DNA of 64,000 nucleotides, taken from the NCBI RefSeq assembly GCF_964188315.1, contig NC_135667.1:25854001-25918000 (forward strand), given 5' to 3'. This document shows, in pieces, positions 26,351 through 39,200 of this stretch; within the stretch, counting starts at the first letter, position 1; the number at the start of each line of letters is the position of its first letter. Source of the DNA: Podarcis muralis. Taxonomy: Eukaryota. The notes beneath the pieces were generated by a model. It worked only from the letters and a program-made list of their open reading frames with translations, did no database searches and was not told where the DNA came from. A program made the translations under genes and the position numbers.

Positions 26351-27255
26351 TCATGTTCTTTTTTTGCCAATTAGTTGTTCTCTGGTGTTCAACTCAGGTC
26401 TGAATATAATAATGTAGCATTTTGGGGAAAAGATACAACCCAGTAATCCAGCACCAGAGGACAAGATGGAAAAGATCTCCACAGCTACCATGTATTTTCC
26501 TTTGGTGCTCAGATAGGTGGGAACAAAGGACAACCAAACACTACAAAACACCAGCAGGCTGAAAGTGATAAATTTGGCCTCATTGAAACTGTCAGGTAAC
26601 TTCCTGGCCAGGAAAGCCAAGATGAAGCTGACAATGGCCAGCAAACCCATATAGACTAAGACACCATAAAACATGGCCACTGAACCCTCATTACATTCAA
26701 GTATGATTTCCCCATGCAGTGAGTGCATATCCATATCTGGGAATGGAGGGGATGTACTTAACCAAAGAGTACCTATGCAAGCCTGAATACAGGAGCAGAA
26801 AAGGACAATAGAATTTGCCAGCCTTTTCCCTATCCATTTCCTCATACTTGATCCTGGTTTGGTTGCCATGAATGCCAGAAGCACAGTAATGGTTTTTGCC
26901 AAAACACTGGAAAGGGCCACAGAAAAGATGATGCTAAAAGTGATTTGTCGGAGAAGGCAGGTGACCTTTTGAGGCTGTCCAATGAAGAGAAAGGAGCAGA
27001 GGAAACAAAGCAGGAGAGAGATGAGGAGAATGTAGGTCAGAGTCCGATTGTTGGCTTTGACTATGGGAGTATTATTGTGCTTCATAAAAGTCCCAAGGAT
27101 GAATGTTGTGACCAGAGAGAAAGAAATAGTCAAGATAACTAAGATAAGCCCTAAATCTTCTTCATAAGAGAGGTAGCTTGGGACCTTGGGAATGCATTGG
27201 GTTTGGTCATGGTTGGGATACTCATCTTCTGGACATTTCACACAGGCAGCCATAT
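26351..27255 (-). CDS. V2R exon 6 (7TM)
   Basis: Acceptor ttttatttcag|at. [45 protein letters not shown]. Confidence 0.95.
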
Positions 27256-30200
27256 CTGAAATAAAAGAGGAGCTGTTTAAATATTGCAGATACTGACCAA
27301 TGTACAGCTAAAGCATTGGTTCTTAACTTTTTGGGAGGCACGTCACAGAACTTTTATATAATCTCCTCATAAAAATATCCACATAAAGACATAAACAGCG
27401 AATTTTGCATTCAATTTATATTCAAAATTCCCTTTTTTCACATAGACAGAATCTAAAAACCGTCTACAATGTTTCATGTTATTTCATGCAGCTGTAAAAC
27501 ATTGGGTTGCTCTGTTATGCTGACAATTTATTTTGCCCGTTGTTTGAAATATTATTCCTAAATTAATGATGACAGAAACTGTATTGCAAGATTATCAAAG
27601 GGGAGAAACAATGATGGTGAATGTATCCTGAAATGTTGGTGATATTATCACCATGTTGTATAATATAAACTTGAAGGCTGGGATTCAACCAGGCTTTTGA
27701 GTGTTCTTGAGGAATGAATGTTTCACAAAGCCATTTCCGAGCCTCGGGAGGAGAGGGTGTTGCGGGCTGGCCCCTCCCACAAGCGCGGGGGCTGGAGCTT
27801 AGCCCCCGCGAGAGCAAGGGAATCCCCGGGGGCGTGCCTCTCCGCCTTCCCCCTGTCCGCCAATCGGCGGGCGGGGGAGGTGTGGCCTGCGCTATTTAAG
27901 GCCAGGCACGCCCCGGGATCGCCCTCTTCACTCCTCAGCAGCAGAGAAGTTTTGTTTTCAGCTGATCGCTTCAGGGATCCCCCCCTTTTTTTTTTACCTC
28001 GTGCAGCGTGCGGGAAGCCCTTCGGAGCGCTCCTTCGTGCACCCTTGAGAGAGGCATCGCAGCAACCGCCGTAGCTTGGACCGCGTGGGGTCCGTTTTTT
28101 CTACCAACCCGCTTGCGGTTATTCGCCAAAAAGAGCTGAAATACATAGGGGGGTTTCGGGGGGGCTTATTCTCGTAGGTTGCGCAGCCACGCTCTCGGCA
28201 GTCAACGGTAGTAGTAGACGAAGGAAAGGAGCGCCGCCGCCCGTGCGCGATTCGCGCGCTCCGGATAGCTTCCCCTTCGTGGCTTCGTTGCCTTTGTCGA
28301 GGGTCGCCTGCCGCTGCTTACCGCCGAACAGCTGGTCGCCTTCCGCGCCGCCTTCCTCCCGCGTCGTTCCCCCGTCACCACTCGGAACAGGTCGTATTGT
28401 GTTTTGCTTTTGGGGATCTGTATATTTTGTTTTTTCGTGCTAGGTTTGGTGGTATCGTGAAACCTTGCTTGCGGGAGTCTGCGTGTCGCCGTTAGTTGCT
28501 TTCCCCACGCTACGAGCCCCCACCCCTTTTCGGTGTCTCCTCATCCTCCCTCCTATTGCTGCGGTCTTTCGTTCCCTGATTCTGTGAATAGCGCAAAGCG
28601 TTCTCTGCTGCTGCTTTGCTTTGCGTCCCCCTGATCCTGTGTCTATCTCTCGTTGCGAAGCTCCTCCGCAGCGCGCCCACAATTGATATAGTATATTGGC
28701 CACGGGCTGCTGCAAAAATTTAGATTTAGTTTCGGGAGGTTTCTGGGTTCCGCAAAGCAGCTTTTACGAGGAGATTGGGTGGCGTTGCTAAGCAACAAGA
28801 TTGCTTTCAGCGCCATTTTGAATTGACCACGTGGCTCTGGGGCGGCAGCCATTTTGGGAGAGGCACGCCGCATTAGGATAGCGTTCAACGCCATTTTGTT
28901 TTGCCCACGTGGCTCCGGAGCGGCAGCCATTTTGGGAGAGGCAGGCTGCATTAGGATAGCGTTCGACGCCATTTTGTTTTGACCACGTGGCTCAGGGGCG
29001 GCAGCCATTTTGGGAGGGGCAAAAGCCGGTTAGGAAGGAAGCCTTCCGGGTGGCATTAACAAAATTGTAGGCACACTTAGCACAGTGGGGGGATAGGAAG
29101 AGGAGGCCCGGTAGTCAAGCTTAGGTACAACCAACTCATCTAGGAGGCTTGCAATTTAACAACGTTGTTCCCAAACCCCACCCCACCCCCAATTTTTTGC
29201 GGATTCTGCTGGCATCATCATTTCGTAATTAAAGTGCATAGTGCCCGGCTTTGAGGGCTTGCCTATGAGAAACTCAGTTAAGTGACGTGCTTCATTTAGT
29301 AGTTAATTATAGTGAATCTTTCCGCAGTAATTCATTCCTTAAGGTACGCAGAGCCAGTTAAGTGACGTGCTTCATTTAGTAGTTAATTATAGTTAATTAT
29401 AGTGAATCTTTCCGCAGTAATTCATTCCTTAAGGTACGCAGAGCCAAGTTTCTATTTAATTGGATTAGCCGGGCAAGGCAATTACTTGGTAACTGAATTA
29501 TTTACATAGGTACCGGATTAGCAGCCTCACCGCCATAATTCCCCTCCGCTTTAATGCTTGGCAATAAATTTTTGAGATAGACTTGAAGTTATCCATCTGG
29601 GCACAGCTCCTGCTGTTCTCCCATTTGTGCTCCATTTCAGGTTCAAGTTAAGTATAAGCAAGCGGATCTAGTGGAAGAGGCGGGTGGTGTGAAGTCAACT
29701 GTTTTTATATATGCATTTTAATACTTATTAAGCGTTGTTAAATAAATAAATAAGTAGATAAATATATATTAATAAAAAATAAAATAAAAAATTGTTTTAA
29801 TTATTAACTAATCAAGAATTAACTAATTAAACTAAAATAAAATTAATAGTTAGTTAAAAAAATAAATAAAAAATAAATAAATAAATAGGGGGTCTAATCG
29901 CCTTGCTAGATCTTTCGGTACTGTTAGGTACAGTTGATATTGCAATGGCTTCCGGAGGCGAGCAACAGCCTTCCACCTCCGGCAATCAGTCAGCAGCTGC
30001 AGCAAGTAGCGGGGGTGCACAGATGGTGTCCATGTCTTGCAATCCCCAAGCGTTTGACCAGCTTTTCAGGGCATTTGAATCTTTTTATAGACAGTGTAGG
30101 CCCGGGCCCGGGGCACCTCCGGCTCCAGAGCAGTCGCAGGACGTTATTCCCGACACACCACCAGCCAATCAAGGACAGCAGGGCATACCTCTCGCGGCAG

Positions 30201-33200
30201 TAGCCAGTGCCCAGCCTGGGACACCAACCGCAAGCCGCCCCAATACACGTGCCCAGTCCGTGCTAGCCAGGAAGGCAGTGCAAGGTGGTAGCAAAGGCAA
30301 GGCACCCGCGAAACATGGCGGCAAAGGGAAGACTCCGGCTAAGGGGGCCAATGTCATACCCCTCTCACAAACATCAGGTATTCCGAGTGTTTTCCAGAAA
30401 CAGCAGCCTCTGCATAGCTCCACCGAGGACAGCGCAGGTTCTGGGTCCGACGAGGACCGGGTGGAACCCCAACCACCTCAGCCGGTTGCCGAGACCAGCG
30501 CAGCTGCCGCAGACACTCAAGGGGGTAAGAGGAAGTCAAAGAAGAAGCACATCTCCGCAAAAAAGAAGAGGAGCAAGCAATCGGATACGGAAGAGGACAC
30601 AGGTACGTCTTCTTCAGACTCTGATGATGAGGCCCTTATGGATGGGTACTGGGGTCAAGGGGGAAATAATCACGGGATCCCTTTGTGGGCACATGAGCGG
30701 AGGGCAAATTCCCATAGGAAGACCTTCAGTGGGGTGCTGGAGTGGAAGGATGGGGCTCTGGTGGAAGATGTAAAGGTCGCCACCAATCAGCCCACGGATT
30801 TCATATTGGGGAACCATTTGTCGCAGAAAAAGAGAAATAAGATTCTTAATGGAGACTATGTAGACATGTTCACCCTCCTCCCTCCAGCCAAATTAATGGA
30901 AAAAGGTGAAAAGAGGCGCTCTTACGGTAAGAGGAGGTATAGAACACCTAGGGCGGAGCGCAATTTCGAAAACTGGTTAGATGGTTACCAGATTTTCATG
31001 GGAGTTGTGTGCGCTGCCTATCCCCGACGCTCCATGGACTTGGTAGCTTACATGGCTCACGTGAGGAGGGCTCGTGCGCTCGCGGGTGAAAATGCTGCAT
31101 TGACATATGATGAGAATTTCCGTAGAAATGCGTCTCTGCTCCCTGCTACCCGATGGGACCTTACTGATCCAAACTACTGGGGAGAAGATGTAAATCCATA
31201 CATTGATAAGAAAAACCTGGATACGGCCAGAGTTGGTAAGACCGAGGTGAAACGCCGGCGCCAGTGTTGGGAGTTTAACAGGGGCGTTTGCTCCCGTCCC
31301 TTATGTAAGTACCTACATGAGTGCGAACGTTGCTGGGGTAACCACCCCGCTTCTGCCTGCTTTAAAGGTAAGCAGCAGCCCTTTCGTGGGGGCAGGGGGT
31401 ACTTCAACGGCAACGCCAGGGGTGCCCCCGGATCCTCCCACCAGGGACCAGGTAACCGCCTGTAACACCGGCACAGTAACGTTAGTGGCGCCCACGGATC
31501 TGCCCATCTCGGAACAGTTAACCCCCAGTAATCTTGACCTCGGTTTGGCTTTTTCCCCTATCCGCCTGCAGCCTTTAAAATCCCTCTTAGAGATATACCC
31601 TGAGCGGAAAGCCGCGCAATATCTTTGGGAAGGCTTCTCCAAAGGTTTCCGAATCCCGGTAGCAGTTCCCCCCAATTCCAGGGAGCCTCAAAATCAAAAA
31701 TCAGTTAGGGAGAGGCCGGATATAGCTAGGAAAAAGATAGAGAAGGAAATCAGGGCGGGGAGAGTGGCAGGTCCCTTTGATGAGCCTCCCTTTGAGGGTC
31801 TTCACTTATCTCCTCTGGGTATAGTACCAAAGAAGGCTCCTGGAGAATTCCGGATGATTCATAACCTGTCCTACCCTAGGGGTGCCTCAGTCAACGACGC
31901 AATCCCCCAGGAGCTTTGCTCAGTTAAATACGCTTCATTTGATCAAGCGGTAAAAATGATTCGTAGATTTGGGCAAGGGGCATCACTGGCAAAATGCGAC
32001 ATCGAGTCGGCCTTCCGCCTTCTCCCGGTACGTCCAGATGACTTCCGGTGGTTGGGCTTCAAATTTGAGGGGGCTTATTTCATTGACAAGGTGATGCCCA
32101 TGGGCTGCTCCGTCGCTTGCGCAGCCTTCGAGTCATTCAGTACATTTTTGGATTGGGCCCTACGCCATAGGACAGGGTCGTCGGGCGTGTCGCATTACCT
32201 CGATGATTTTATCCTGGCCGCTGATAGCAGACCTCGATGCTCTGCTCTCCTCAAGGCCTTCACAGACTTAGCGGGGGAATTGGGGGTACCGCTGGCCGCG
32301 GACAAAACTGAGGGCCCGGCCACTAGCATGGTGTATTTGGGTATTGAGCTAGATACTGTGGCACAGACCTCCAGGTTGCCAAAGGATAAGCTCTTGGCGC
32401 TTAAGGCAATGATTCTGCAGCTACTGCCCCTAAGGAAAGTCACCCTACGACAAATTCAATCCCTCTTAGGACACCTAAATTTTGCATGTAGGGTGGTGGC
32501 GCCGGGGCTCCCCTTTTGTAACCGCTTGGCCAGACTGTCGGCAGGTCTTAAGGCGCCACAGCACAGGGTACGCCTATCCAAGGAGGTTAAAGCAGACTTA
32601 GGCGTCTGGTTGCAATTCCTAGAAAAGTACAACGGTATATCCTTATGGCAAGACTCCATGGCACTCAACACCGACTTCCAAGTGCAGTCGGATGCCGCAG
32701 GGTCGCTGGGTTTTGGAGTTTACTTTAAAGGCCAATGGTGTGCCAGAAAGTGGCCCACGGAATGGAGAGGACAGCCCATTACTCGGGACCTTACATTCTT
32801 GGAATTTTTTCCAATAGTAGTGGCAGTACACCTCTGGGCAGAACAGTTCAGCAATCATAGGGTTTGCTTCAATACAGACAATCAAGCAGTGGTGGCGGTC
32901 CTGGCCAGACAATCTGTGCGCTCCACCAGAGTAGGGAACCTATTGCGAGCCTTTGTTCTTCTGTGTCTGGAACGGAACATATACTTTTCGGCCAAATTTG
33001 TACCTGGCGTTAATAATGACATCGCGGATGCTCTGTCTCTTTTTCAGATGGAGCGCTTTCGCTCATTAGCGCCGGATGCGGAGCAATCATCGATGCCTTT
33101 CCCGGAGCATCTCTGGAGGATTGGGAGAGAGAAGTAATGAAGGGAGTATTCGGTGCTGTGGCCCCGTCCACGATGCGTTCATACAAGAAGGCTTGGGCCG

Positions 33201-36200
33201 ATTTCCTAATTTTCCGCAGTAAAGCACCAGGCGCTAGGCCCTATGCTGCCCCTTCAACAAGAGAGGTCCTCCACTACCTGGCTCACCTGAAGGAGTTAGG
33301 CAGGGCCCCTAAGACCCTCAATATCCAGTCGGCAGGGATATCTTATTTCTGTAAAGCCTTTTTCACGACCGACCCGTGCGCGGCTTTTATCGTACGCAAA
33401 ACTCTTGAGGGTTGGCGCAGGCAGCACCCCCCTAGTGCAGATGGGAGGCGGCCTTTAACGTATGACATCTTGTCCCAGATTCACAAGGCATTACGTACGG
33501 TATGCTGGTCTAAGTATGAAGCGCGCCTATTCTCGGCTGCGTTCTCGATATCCTTTTTCGGCGCCCTACGCATAGGAGAGGTCGTCTGTGAAGGGGGAGT
33601 TACCCATGCTCAGAGGGGCATCTTATTAAGTGACATAACCCTGTCACGGTCGGACCTAATCATCCGGGTCCGGAGCTCAAAGACAGACCAGCAGGGAAAA
33701 GGGGCCCTACTTCGCCTTCCAGCAGCTCAGGACAAGGGGCCCTGCCCAGTTAGGGACGCGAGACGCTTTCTATACCTAAGACCCAAGAACCCTGGACCCT
33801 TGTTTATTCATGCAGACGGGTCGCGACTGGCTAGGCAGCAATTCACCCGGGTAATGCGTATGGCTTTGACGGCATGTGGTTTGCCTGCGGCAGAGTTTGC
33901 GGCACACTCCTTCCGTATTGGTGCGGCCACCACCGCGGTGCATCTGGGGCTCTCCACCGAGAGGATCAAGGAAATGGGGAGGTGGAGATCTAATGCTTAT
34001 AAAACTTATGTCAGAAATAACGTATGACTAGGAAGAATACCACTGAACTCTCTTTCCCTGTCTGCTTGCTTTCCAGGAACTAGAAGGTTGTGCATTTGGT
34101 TGGTGGGCCACAGTATAGTACATTGGGCCAAGAATCGGGCCATGAGTACAGGACTGGGGCAAAATCTGAAGTTGCCTGCGAATGTGGAGCTGGCGTGGCT
34201 AGCGCGGAGAGGGATGCGCTGGAGTGAGTTTAAGCCAGCAGTGATGGCGAGAGCTGCCTCAGAGGGGCCCCCTGATGCATTGGTGATTCAGTTGGGAGAA
34301 AACGATCTCGCATATCGCAAGGCGATTGATCTCAGATGGAACATTTTTGATGACCTGTCCGAACTGGTGACAGTGTACCCAAACATCAAAATACTGTGGT
34401 CCTCGTTGCTTGAGAGGAGGACTTGGAGGGACTGTGCGAGTCCAGTTGGTGTGAATAAAGCGAGGAAAGTTTTAGAGCGGGCAGTGGAACGTAGAGTGGT
34501 GGCCTTGGGCGGGTGGATCATTCGACATCCACATATACAGTTCAGCAACGAGGCCCTCTACAGGCGGGATGGCGTGCATTTGTCCGATGCTGGGAACGAT
34601 ATATGGTTGGGGGACATCATAGTAGGTATTAGAGGTTGGTTACAGGCCTGAAGGTATTGGCGGCGAGCTACGCTCGAGTGGCGGTTAGGCATTGGCAGGG
34701 GTCTATTGTTATGCAAATGGATGGGGGGAAGGACACGCCATCACCTTCCCACGAGAAAAAGGGTAGTCCGGTAGAGGACTCCGGGGGCGTTGCCTTGTCC
34801 GAGACCTAGTAAGGTGAGGGCCGCCGGCACGCCCACGAGCGGTGACACCCGTGGGGGTCCTAGTTGGCGTACTCCAACGGGACACCCACGGTTCGTGTTC
34901 AACCCTTCCCGGTTACCATGCCGGGTAGTGATAGGAGCCAATGCCTAAGGCCAATACCTTCAATTCTGTAATCAATAAAGTTGTGGCCATTTACGCCCAT
35001 TAACCTTAAATAATGTGTCTTGTGTCTTTATTTCATATGGGGGAGGGAACTTGCCACGCAATGAGTTCTCACATCTGATACTGGAAATGCAGAAAGTAGA
35101 AATGTCCTTTATTATTTATTTATTTAAAAAATTTTCCCTGTTCTTCATTGTTAATCTAATTTCAAAGTAAAAAAATATGTTGTGATAAGATTCTATTTTT
35201 TTAAAAAATGTAACTAAATGTAACTAAAAACAAAATATATTCTTGAAATGCTAGACGGTCAAGAAGGAAAAGGGTCTTCTGGATACCATATTGAAACTTC
35301 ACATATCAAGATTGGAAAGATATAGGAAAGTCTTTTTCATTAACTGTGGAACTACCTGACAGGTTGCTTTGACTGACAGATAGTGATGGACACAAATTCA
35401 GCCAGTGCCATACTCTTTAAAACTCTTAAAATATAATAGTTAGGGATTTATTTTTTGTTTACAATTTTTCATTGCAAACTACCGTCCTATGCATTCAAAG
35501 GGTTACACTTTATGTTTTGTCATGGAAATGCAAATAAGATAGTTGTGTCCATTATTCCTCCCACCTTTATACTTGGAGACCATTCCTTCTGGACATGGAG
35601 CACAATCATAGCAGCAAAATTTCTCTCCCTCCTTCTTTTTCTTGCTGTAGCCAGGATAGCAGCAGTCATTGCACACAGAAATGGGTAGCACCTGTACAGA
35701 ATCAATAAAGAAAGGGTAATAGATCACTGAAAAAAGGAGGTTGGGAGAAGAAACGGAAGCTCCAGGTTAGAGCTGGGAGAGTTCACTTTTCTCTGTCTTG
35801 TCAAGTTAAGATTTACTTGTGGAAGAGGACTTTTTGTGCTTCTCTCTCACACACACTTTTGCTCTCATTTAGGTTAGGTTTTTTATTGTATTCTTTTATA
35901 TCCCTCAGCTGCCGTGGGAAAACCAGGAAATCCCATTTTGTCACACACGAGCACAGCGGCCATTTTAGGCATTGAGATCTCACCCTTTAAAAAGTGCTTT
36001 TTCAGGGCCACGATCTCACGCAGATCATGTGACTCACATGGGAGCACGGCCCTGGAAGGTGGCATCCTAGTTTTATAGTGTGTTGAGGGGTATGTTGTAT
36101 TAATAAAAGGGAGAAAAGGAGATTGTTTCAGTTGCTGAGGAACTGAGAGGTTGGGCATTAGATTTTGTTCTACTCACATAAATGTACATTTTGCATTGGA

Positions 36201-39200
36201 ATGAAGAACCTCTGGCTCACTAGCAGGCAACCCTCCCCAGGTCACATCGCCCAAGTGCTTTCCCCTGGCTAGAATGTGTTCTTAAACTCTCATAATGTCT
36301 CAGCATGGCCTTTTCAGAGAGATGTTTATTTGGTAGTGTATGTAGAAACTTATAATTTTTAAATAGGTGGATATAGTTCTTTTAATGTCCTAAATAAGGA
36401 AATATCTATCCAAATGAAAAGAGTCCCTTAAAGATAATACCTAGCCCCCTTTCCTGAAATCAGTTCATGAAATAAGTTATTTATTTATTGGGGGACAGGA
36501 AAAATAAAACATATACAGTGGTACCTTGGGTTACATACGCTTCAGGTTACATACGCTTCAGGTTACAGACTCCACTAACCCAGTTTCAGGTTAAGAACGG
36601 ACCTCTGGAACGAATTAAGTACGTAACCAGGGGTACCACTGTAATAGGAATTCAACCTAGTTAGAACAGGAATATAATAATGTTTTTGAAAAGATTCATG
36701 GAATAATAAAACATCCTATGGGATTTTATGAAAACTAAATTTGAAAGGGAGTTAGATGACTTCAATGCCTTTGAAAAAATTGAGTCAAAACATCAAATGC
36801 CTCAGAGCTGTGTCTCACCTGATTAAAAACATTATGCCACACAATTTGATCATCATTTATGCTTAATTCTTTTCCTAAAGGTGCCTGAGGATCCAGTCTT
36901 CCAACTTTGACCCTAAACAATGAGCCATTCGGGGAAATAATCCAGTTTGTTACATCAAAACCTGTAACTAACTCTCCATTATCATCAAAACACACTGAAT
37001 CCCCAGCACTATTGTTGAACAAAATGGACCTTAGAAAATGATGGACCTAGATAGAAAGAAAGTGAAGACTGTTTCAAAATTCTTCAACAATGTATGTGGT
37101 GACTTCATCCATTGGGCGATCATGTTTTGTTCTTGAATTGGAAACCTTATATGATTATTTGATATTTCTAATTATCATTACTTTCCTTTATCTCCAGGTT
37201 GGTGGGTGATTTTGAATTGAAATAGCAATATTTTATCATGGGAGCATCGATACTTATCATAATGGATTTCCAAAAGGAGAAGAAAAACATGAAAGGCAAT
37301 GAAAACGAATAGAGGCACAGGAATTGTCTCATGCAGACATAAAATTCCCTATTTTTCTGGATGAAAACATAGACTTTTAAAAATGTTTGGTTGTAATTAC
37401 CTGCCATGGTTGCACATTCTGAAAAAATAGTTTCTGTTGTTCTCCCAACCTTCTACTTTTGGAATTGGATTCGTAAACGGCTTGCAAAGCATGGGCCACA
37501 GCATGGACAGCATTGTAAACATTGTAGCTGTGGCCAGTCATTTCCATTTCAAACAAGGTCCCAGGAAGACTCTCCACCTTCTCTCCTCCAGAGCAGTATT
37601 TCCTTTCCTGATGCTGCCCATTAGACATTTGTAATGAACAGTTGAATGCCTGTTCCCAAAAGTCCTGGATAAAACCATCTCCTTTGGCCCATGAAGGTCT
37701 TAGCATCTGAAGGAAATTTTGGAATCCCAATGGTTGATTTGAATGAACCGTGAAGGATATGGAACCATGGAAGGTTTGTAAATCCCAAATCTTTTGAATA
37801 GAGTGTGATGCAAAATCCCAGTGGGATGTAATAATCCACACTTTACCCAGAGGGGGCAAGTCCGCCAAGGGTGCTAGAAACAACATCATTCTTAGAACTT
37901 GAAAGGATGGAGGTTCCCCATATACAAAAAATACATTGGCCTTTTTTTCAAAGACAATGATATAAGCATCCATGTGCTTAAAAAACCAGTCTAGCATCTC
38001 ATCCATATAACTCCATTTTGGTATGTTTACTATGAAGTCATAACAGATGCCATTCTGGGTAAGCATTGGCACTATTGTCTGTAAAAACCTGTTCCCTTTG
38101 TCATCATCCACGGCAAAAAGCCCAACCCAGGTCCATCTGAAATGCTGAAGTAACTGGACAAGTCCTTTGTGCTGCTGGGCTTCATTGGGCACCATCTGGT
38201 ACAAGAATGGGAATAGCATTCTTGTACTTTGTACTGGTAAAAATGATCCGTAAGTGAGCTGTAATGAAACCCATGAATATTTCTCAAACAGATTACAAGA
38301 GAATAGTAAATCTAGTTCAACATCCTTTTGAAAACCAGAATCACAGTTTCTGCAATCAATGGCTGTTTAATTTGCCCTATTATTGAAGTATTTTTACTCC
38401 CAGTGTTGGACCTTAAGCAAGTACTACTTTTGCAGCAGTACTGAATGAATCTTTGACCTCTTCTATGTGGCAACAGTTTCATTCTTTGAAGAGTGTTGCA
38501 ATATTCTGCCTCAAACTCATTTTCAAGAGCCTGAACATACCAATTTCTTTCAACCTTTCCTTATATGATGTGTTTTCCATACTCCTGACCATATTCATTG
38601 TCCTCCTCTGAACCTATTCTGAAATGAGTGCATTCTTATTTAAGTGTGGCAACAGTGGTCAACATGAAGTCTTACTAGCTAAAGCTACATAGATGGGCCT
38701 TTACTACTTTCAGTTCAGGCTAATCTGGTATTTATCTATTTACAGCCACATCACAAAATCTCACATAAATCTGCTTTCTGATCAGCTGAAATCTTGGGAG
38801 AATGATTTCACATGTCATACTGGTAAGGATGCGGGGGGGGGGGTAATTAATTTCACATTTACAGCTAAATCCATTTAAAATGTATATGAGAATCGAAACA
38901 AAGCCATTCTCAAACCAAACAATGTTTATAAACAAGCATATATAATAGGAAAGTAAGAACAAAAATAGGATATCAATGCAAACAGTATAAAAACTGCATT
39001 ATATTAGGAGAAATTGCTTGCAAAAATGAACATTAGTCACAGCTGCATACAAAAGTGTGTTTATTAGGAGAAATTAACACATTAAAAACGTTAAAATGAG
39101 AGGATTTTGTCTAAAGAAATGCAATTTGCTGCAGAAATGTGCAGAACTGAATTTAGGATTGGGAAAATGGGAATCTGAGCAAATCAAAATGGACAGCTCT

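Follow-up and report, generated by a model that had tools for sequence, protein, structure and literature searches.

The window, a stretch of 64,000 nucleotides (nt) of Podarcis muralis DNA (contig NC_135667.1, positions 25,854,001 to 25,918,000), holds an intact Ngaro-type retrotransposon with genes for Gag, reverse transcriptase (RT), tyrosine recombinase (YR) and an SGNH hydrolase, or esterase. We think it likely that the element expresses its downstream genes in the manner of a retrovirus, by partial splicing from one donor inside gag to two acceptors; for P. muralis, the spliced RNAs are proposed on the strength of splice sites, reading phases, conservation and RefSeq gene models. Unspliced RNA would serve as both the genome and the Gag mRNA, and RT would be made from it by some other means. 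The single 5' splice site, D1, would lie inside gag after position 30602 in phase 1. Joined to an acceptor whose exon begins at 33048 (A1), it would give a leader-recombinase protein of 545 residues, and joined to one whose exon begins at 34077 (A2), a leader-esterase protein of 410 residues. Both recombinase and esterase would take the gag start codon and a 219-residue leader with a basic cluster resembling a nuclear localisation signal. We suggest that the donor, which departs from consensus (C at +4), would keep splicing partial and that the leader may supply nuclear targeting or RNA binding, in an architecture like that of the esterase-type first open-reading-frame protein (ORF1p) of CR1/L2 elements.

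The original prediction, made from the window sequence, had placed two donors (after 30602 and after 31451) and the acceptor before 34077. All of these coordinates and phases are correct, every site being phase 1, and the joined lengths are right as well (658 + 575 nt for 410 residues, 1507 + 575 nt for 693 residues). That the same donor may also serve the acceptor at 33048 for the recombinase is an addition to that proposal.

Conservation of the proposed donor and acceptors

The comparison set consisted of ten elements, the window's own and nine relatives (L001 to L009), from four lacertid and two gecko species, and Gag identity between the families in this set falls as low as 26–36%. Across it, D1 is found in all ten elements at the same glycine codon, which is always GGT and always sets the donor in phase 1. 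The donor reads GTACGT in six elements, GTACCT and GTTCGT in one each, and GTGAGT in the two gecko elements, where the residue after the glycine changes from T to E and the donor becomes a perfect GTGAGT. As background, among the 16 invariant four-fold-degenerate codon columns across the seven intact gag open reading frames (ORFs), one has the same third base throughout. Two control glycine codons drift: that at the second donor of the original prediction, after 31451 (D2), is GGT, GGC, GGT, GGT and GGA in the elements that have it, and that in the SKTDQxG motif of YR has the third bases A, C, T, T, T, G, C, A and T.

The esterase acceptor is kept in all nine elements that have an esterase. 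Each shows a pyrimidine tract followed by YAG, in phase 1, 17–26 nt 5' of the W-x-x-GHS motif, and the acceptor is retained though the spacer around it cannot be aligned among the elements. A branch-like YTNAY motif lies 18–32 nt upstream of A2 in eight of the nine, compared with 26% of random windows. Between A2 and the catalytic motif the spacing varies only by multiples of three, and between the YR stop and A2 by non-multiples. The first ATG of the SGNH frame is 3' of the catalytic serine in six of the nine elements, the window included, and the YR frame has no start ATG in L003 and L006. The recombinase acceptor, A1, is kept in phase 1 in 7/7 elements. For the 30602–34077 fusion put forward in the original prediction, both signals are conserved across copies, the donor in 10/10 and the acceptor in 9/9.

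One P. muralis copy (L002:12023-12047) differs at this end of the element: homology stops directly after the YR stop TGA-CTAG, the esterase exon is missing and the gag ORF is broken at codon 98. A strong acceptor at 31572, just 3' of the gag stop, was weighed as a route to RT and set aside, being out of frame with ORF2 from a phase-1 donor.

Gene models and the proposed leader-esterase product

The exons of the window were searched separately, and the fused architecture was judged from natural database proteins. Two RefSeq models returned by the search with Gag were informative. P0045 (XP_077790728, P. muralis, 428 residues) consists of Gag residues 1–218 followed by SGNH; mapped to its locus it has two exons, with donor cag/GTACGT in phase 1 and acceptor TTTTCTATTTGCTTTTCAG/ (the slash marks the junction). 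P0046 (XP_077778997, P. muralis, 429 residues) carries the end of the same Gag leader and then the recombinase, entered through A1; at its locus it uses the homologous D1 donor and the acceptor GCTCTGTCTCGCTTTCAG/atggagcg. The P0045 search and a full HMMER scan returned leader-plus-SGNH models from P. muralis, P. raffonei, Zootoca vivipara, Gekko japonicus, Eublepharis macularius and Paroedura picta. At each of six more loci that were mapped, a phase-1 donor at the end of the basic/acidic leader is joined to a phase-1 acceptor just 5' of the esterase. Homologous D1–A2 junctions are present in XP_077790728 and XP_077779627 (P. muralis), XP_053229079 (P. raffonei), XP_060135029 (Zootoca), XP_077192432 (Paroedura) and XP_054845443 (Eublepharis). 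Taken by site, RefSeq models use D1 in L001, L002, L003, L004, L007, L008 and L009, A2 in six loci and A1 in P0046 (L002) and P0060 (L004). The Zootoca gene LOC118082278 has one full-Gag isoform and one leader-SGNH isoform. Full Gag joined to SGNH occurs in none of the roughly 230 retrieved proteins, among them those of 278–885 residues, and no model uses D2. The 410-residue fusion fits both the conserved splice signals and these RefSeq models, which place it at homologous sites in five species. A third donor, inside YR after SKTDQxG (models P0055, P0060 and P0080), was considered and rejected, since the window has GGA there instead and the codon is not constant across the elements.

An AlphaFold model of the SGNH exon has a predicted local distance difference test (pLDDT) score of 95 and an SGNH/GDSL fold, and Foldseek matches it to bacterial GDSL lipases with template modelling (TM) scores of 0.7–0.78 at probability 1.00. 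The esterase of zebrafish ZfL2-1 ORF1p (4c1b) also matches (E=8e-7), with a sequence identity of about 16–18%. Pfam Lipase_GDSL_2 scores 20.4 bits on ORF4, under the cut-off of 32.9, and a PDB sequence search with the SGNH exon gave no meaningful match. The catalytic blocks I (G-x-S), II (G), III (G-x-N-D) and V (D-x-x-H) are all present in the window and are invariant or nearly so in 16–24 relatives. Many weaker SGNH matches of the HLGGND type with a coiled-coil N-terminus (Anolis, Pogona, Hemicordylus and frogs) resemble the ORF1p of long interspersed nuclear elements (LINEs) and were left out of the support. Six SGNH proteins, P0088, P0127, P0128, P0146, P0187 and P0195 (from Hemicordylus, Anolis, Eublepharis, Pogona and two frogs), have a basic MPPKKG... 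start, heptad-like helices and HLGGND as block III; their sequences suggest LINE ORF1p of the esterase type and not Ngaro products.

The leader (Gag 1–219) is poorly conserved apart from a helix motif, (D/N)PxA..F...F..F.RQC, acidic serine-rich runs and the basic cluster. The conserved core of Gag, which bears the CCCH fingers, spans residues ~235–505. As this C-terminal core with its zinc fingers would be spliced out, the leader-SGNH protein would not be a structural Gag-esterase. The earlier description of the product as a Gag-esterase particle protein is accordingly abandoned, since only the poorly conserved 219-residue N-terminus is kept.

The esterase exon may also occur outside Ngaro elements. 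In Eublepharis macularius, the last of the six exons of a ZNF318-like host gene (P0221 and P0083; isoforms X1 and X2) is a solo SGNH exon, 581 nt long (L010:52090-52670), entered through a phase-1 pyrimidine-tract acceptor of the same kind as A2; the 55-kilobase locus has no gag, RT or YR. This terminal exon looks like a host capture of a Ngaro esterase exon. Further captures may be represented by P0085/P0222 (Lacerta agilis LOC117053410, isoforms X3/X4) and P0078 (Zootoca 'ZNF638-like'), which are host-like proteins of 887–1166 residues with a C-terminal SGNH domain of Ngaro type. For annotation, intronic Ngaro copies call for caution, as each brings with it a strong terminal exon, ready for capture by host genes.

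Alternative routes to the esterase

The strongest competing explanation, which we nevertheless consider unlikely, is that the esterase is made as a YR-SGNH fusion by readthrough of the YR stop (TGA-CTAG), the splice-like sites being idle or only a parallel route. TGA-CTAG, an efficient readthrough context in vertebrates, is common to L002, L005 and the window. In 5/9 elements (the window, L004, L005, L006 and L007), against one third expected by chance, SGNH continues the frame of YR through an open spacer, with one stop between them. However, two elements (L001 and L003) have the SGNH frame offset from YR by +2 and two others (L008 and L009) by +1, and three of these four (L003, L008 and L009) have intact gag ORFs. 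The stop and its context also vary (TAA-GTA, TAA-TTT, TAA-TCT, TGA-ATT), the spacer changes length by non-multiples of three, and the peptide it would encode is an unconserved one rich in Leu, Phe and Ser. With offsets of 0, +1 and +2 among the elements, readthrough cannot be the general route. The original prediction had offered splicing as an alternative or parallel to readthrough; splicing looks like the conserved route, and readthrough would be at most a side route in the window's subfamily.

Besides the window's own in-register frames, several observations weigh against the splicing scheme. The branch-like motif of the window is CTGAA at -31, where close relatives have CTGAC, and is one base off YTNAY. 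The conservation of A1 may reflect coding alone, because the site overlaps the RNase H coding motif ADALS(R/L)FQ. The RefSeq models are predictions, and some of their introns appear made to skip defects; in P0046 an extra intron merely skips a broken stretch of gag. Such models can be seeded by proteins of other species, which makes the loci less than fully independent. None of the Logan and ENA assembly contigs with the esterase is a spliced form, and P0068 and P0227-229 are unspliced, starting inside the spacer. Finally, judged in the single sequence, the sites of the window are within chance expectation: the transcript region of the element has 3 donors that match at least 8/9 of the consensus and 8 strong acceptors, where local shuffles give 2.1 +/- 1.4 and 4.3 +/- 1.9, and within the gag ORF alone there are four phase-1 sites that resemble donors at 7/9 or better. 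With counts so near chance, only conservation across relatives can separate signal from coincidence, and it is on the conservation pattern that we rest the case, because annotation cannot create that pattern.

The same observations could be read to mean that the element does not use the sites at all, that the RefSeq fusions are annotation artefacts, and that the esterase arises by internal or non-AUG initiation or is not made. The chance-level site counts agree with this, gene predictors do place introns so as to keep ORFs open, and L003, L006 and L008 have an ATG 5' of the catalytic serine. We nonetheless regard this explanation as quite improbable, for it leaves unexplained the GGT codon in 10/10 elements, the phase-1 pyrimidine tract with YAG in 9/9 within an unalignable spacer, the matching phases of the donor and both acceptors, and the occurrence of the same acceptor type in the unrelated ZNF318-like host gene. 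The remaining proposal, full-length Gag spliced to the esterase from the donor after 31451 (693 residues), is very hard to credit: a phase-1 GT is present four codons before the gag stop in the window, and also in L002 and L005, but the site matches only 7/9 of the consensus, its codon drifts to GGC in L001 and GGA in L006 and is absent in L003 and L004, and no retrieved protein has that form, so that this donor, which the original prediction had joined to the same acceptor, lacks conservation and probably arose by chance.

The element and its relation to known systems

The window element is an intact Ngaro-type retrotransposon, and its gene order is that of vertebrate Ngaro. A P. muralis element at L001 shows DNA homology to it over 27726-27965 and 30036-35061, and no second copy is present within the 64-kilobase window. 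Its nearest Gag proteins (78% identical) are from Podarcis, with further ones from Zootoca, and its YR shares 82% identity with a protein that RefSeq names integrase/recombinase XerD homolog. A Pfam scan of the four ORFs found no methyltransferase families, as for vertebrate Ngaro. No split direct repeats (A1 ... B1-A2-B2) of at least 25 nt were found in 27000-37500 with a seed of 12, a scope that leaves shorter or diverged repeats aside; the repeat search of this region returned internal tandem repeats and short inverted repeats only. The features are collected in the table.

Table. Features of the Ngaro-type element and the proposed splice sites, in window coordinates (a slash marks an exon boundary)
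Feature	Position	Strand	Evidence and remarks
Whole Ngaro-type tyrosine-recombinase retrotransposon	27760..35061	+	All four ORFs open; DNA homology and domain order gag, RT, YR, SGNH
ORF1, gag, 506 residues	29945..31465	+	46 lacertid homologues, best 78% identical
Coding part of the proposed shared 5' exon	29945..30602	+	gag ATG + 219 codons + 1 nt; includes helix motif and basic cluster
Candidate donor D1, cag/GTACGT	30600..30608	+	Phase 1; preceded by aca; exon ends at 30602, base 1 of gag codon 220 (GGT)
ORF2, RT/RNase H	31317..33137	+	Pfam RVT_1 E=2e-14, 54 bits (cut-off 29.6); falls within the proposed intron
Donor-like site D2, cag/GTAACC	31449..31457	+	Phase 1; last exon base 31451; 7/9 consensus; four codons before TAA at 31463-31465
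Candidate acceptor A1, gctctgtctctttttcAG	33026..33047	+	AG 33046-47; phase-1 exon from 33048, with 30 open codons leading into YR ATG 33137
Proposed recombinase exon	33048..34027	+	30-codon extension + ORF3 YR; 980 nt, equal to exon 3 of P0046
ORF3, YR	33137..34027	+	Pfam Phage_integrase (E=8e-5) and Phage_int_SAM_4 (E=2e-3), neither reaching the Pfam cut-off
YR stop, context TGA-CTAG	34025..34031	+	SGNH frame continues in frame
ORF4, SGNH hydrolase	34028..34651	+	YR frame after a single TGA
Candidate acceptor A2, tctctttccctgtctgcttgctttccAG/gaact	34051..34076	+	Pyrimidine tract 17/20 + CAG; AG 34075-76; exon begins at 34077, in phase 1 with respect to the SGNH frame
Proposed SGNH esterase exon	34077..34651	+	575 nt; GHS (Ser codon 34112-34114), RRGMRW, GENDL, DGVHLS; first ATG 34142, 3' of the catalytic Ser
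AATAAA, likely polyadenylation signal common to all transcripts	34974..34979	+	Sequence reading

Some further features of this copy may be recorded here. At 33135-33139 (TAATG), the recombinase ATG overlaps the RT stop, and termination-reinitiation would be possible in the window's subfamily. CCAAT, GC-box and TATTTAA motifs occur near the 5' end of the element (27863-27899, 28792-29025 and 29275-29446), and the ~2 kilobases between these and the gag ATG contain a 78-nt tandem repeat present three times and a duplicated block of 80–90 nt. A 26-nt inverted repeat, 85% complementary (34636-34661 and 34950-34975), flanks most of the 3' untranslated region before AATAAA.

The downstream ORFs of DIRS/Ngaro elements are often overlapping and without a start codon. 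If our reading is right, one gag donor with two acceptors would be a concrete and testable expression scheme for Ngaro, and sub-genomic splicing, familiar from retroviruses and some long terminal repeat (LTR) elements, would extend to tyrosine-recombinase retrotransposons. It would also account for dozens of "uncharacterized" lizard and gecko RefSeq proteins that consist of a basic, low-complexity N-terminus and an SGNH domain.

The closest parallel is with the retroviruses. In avian leukosis and Rous sarcoma virus, the 5' splice site of the env mRNA lies inside gag, downstream of the gag AUG; env, which has no start codon of its own, receives that AUG and six codons, and splicing is partial, so that genomic RNA is preserved. 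The Ngaro element would be alike in having one donor inside gag that lends the AUG and N-terminal codons to the downstream genes. It would differ in lending 219 codons rather than six and in serving a recombinase and an esterase, in an element that has no LTRs, integrase or env. Spliced mRNAs also set protein ratios or reach an internal ORF in gypsy (env), copia (a gag-only RNA) and foamy virus (pol). The use of host splicing would be common to these LTR retrotransposons and viruses and to Ngaro, which belongs to a different order of elements.

Within the DIRS and Ngaro elements, work on Dictyostelium DIRS-1 concerns the splicing of an artificial marker intron only (PMC7192593), and we found no description of natural splicing in the literature searched, the founding Ngaro/DIRS reviews lying outside its scope. 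The Xenopus Ngaro elements DIRS-53_XT and DIRS-54_XT have an SGNH ORF 3' of the recombinase, the hydrolase having "no proven function" (PMC9210276). They share with the window element the gene order gag-RT/RH-YR-SGNH, where RH is RNase H, and differ from it in that they are described with four overlapping ORFs and split direct repeats and with no expression route (PMC9210276).

The layout of leader and esterase invites comparison with the membrane-binding esterase ORF1p of LINEs. The ORF1p of zebrafish ZfL2-1, which is of the esterase type found in CR1/L2/RTEX LINEs (PDB 4c1a/4c1b), has been suggested to act in membrane or lipid binding (PMC3905857). In the proposed Ngaro product, as in ZfL2-1, a short helical region and a positively charged linker of low conservation would come before the SGNH esterase. 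Block III reads QLGEND in the Ngaro esterase as against HLGGND in the LINE-type matches, and the LINE esterase lies in one continuous ORF1, whereas that of Ngaro is a fourth ORF that would be joined to the leader only in RNA. Whether the scheme holds generally we regard as evenly balanced: SGNH-Ngaro elements of squamates, perhaps of all vertebrates, may run retrovirus-like partial splicing, and the leader-esterase protein may be the YR-element counterpart of the CR1/L2 ORF1p, a convergent assembly reached through RNA splicing in YR elements and through a continuous ORF in LINEs.

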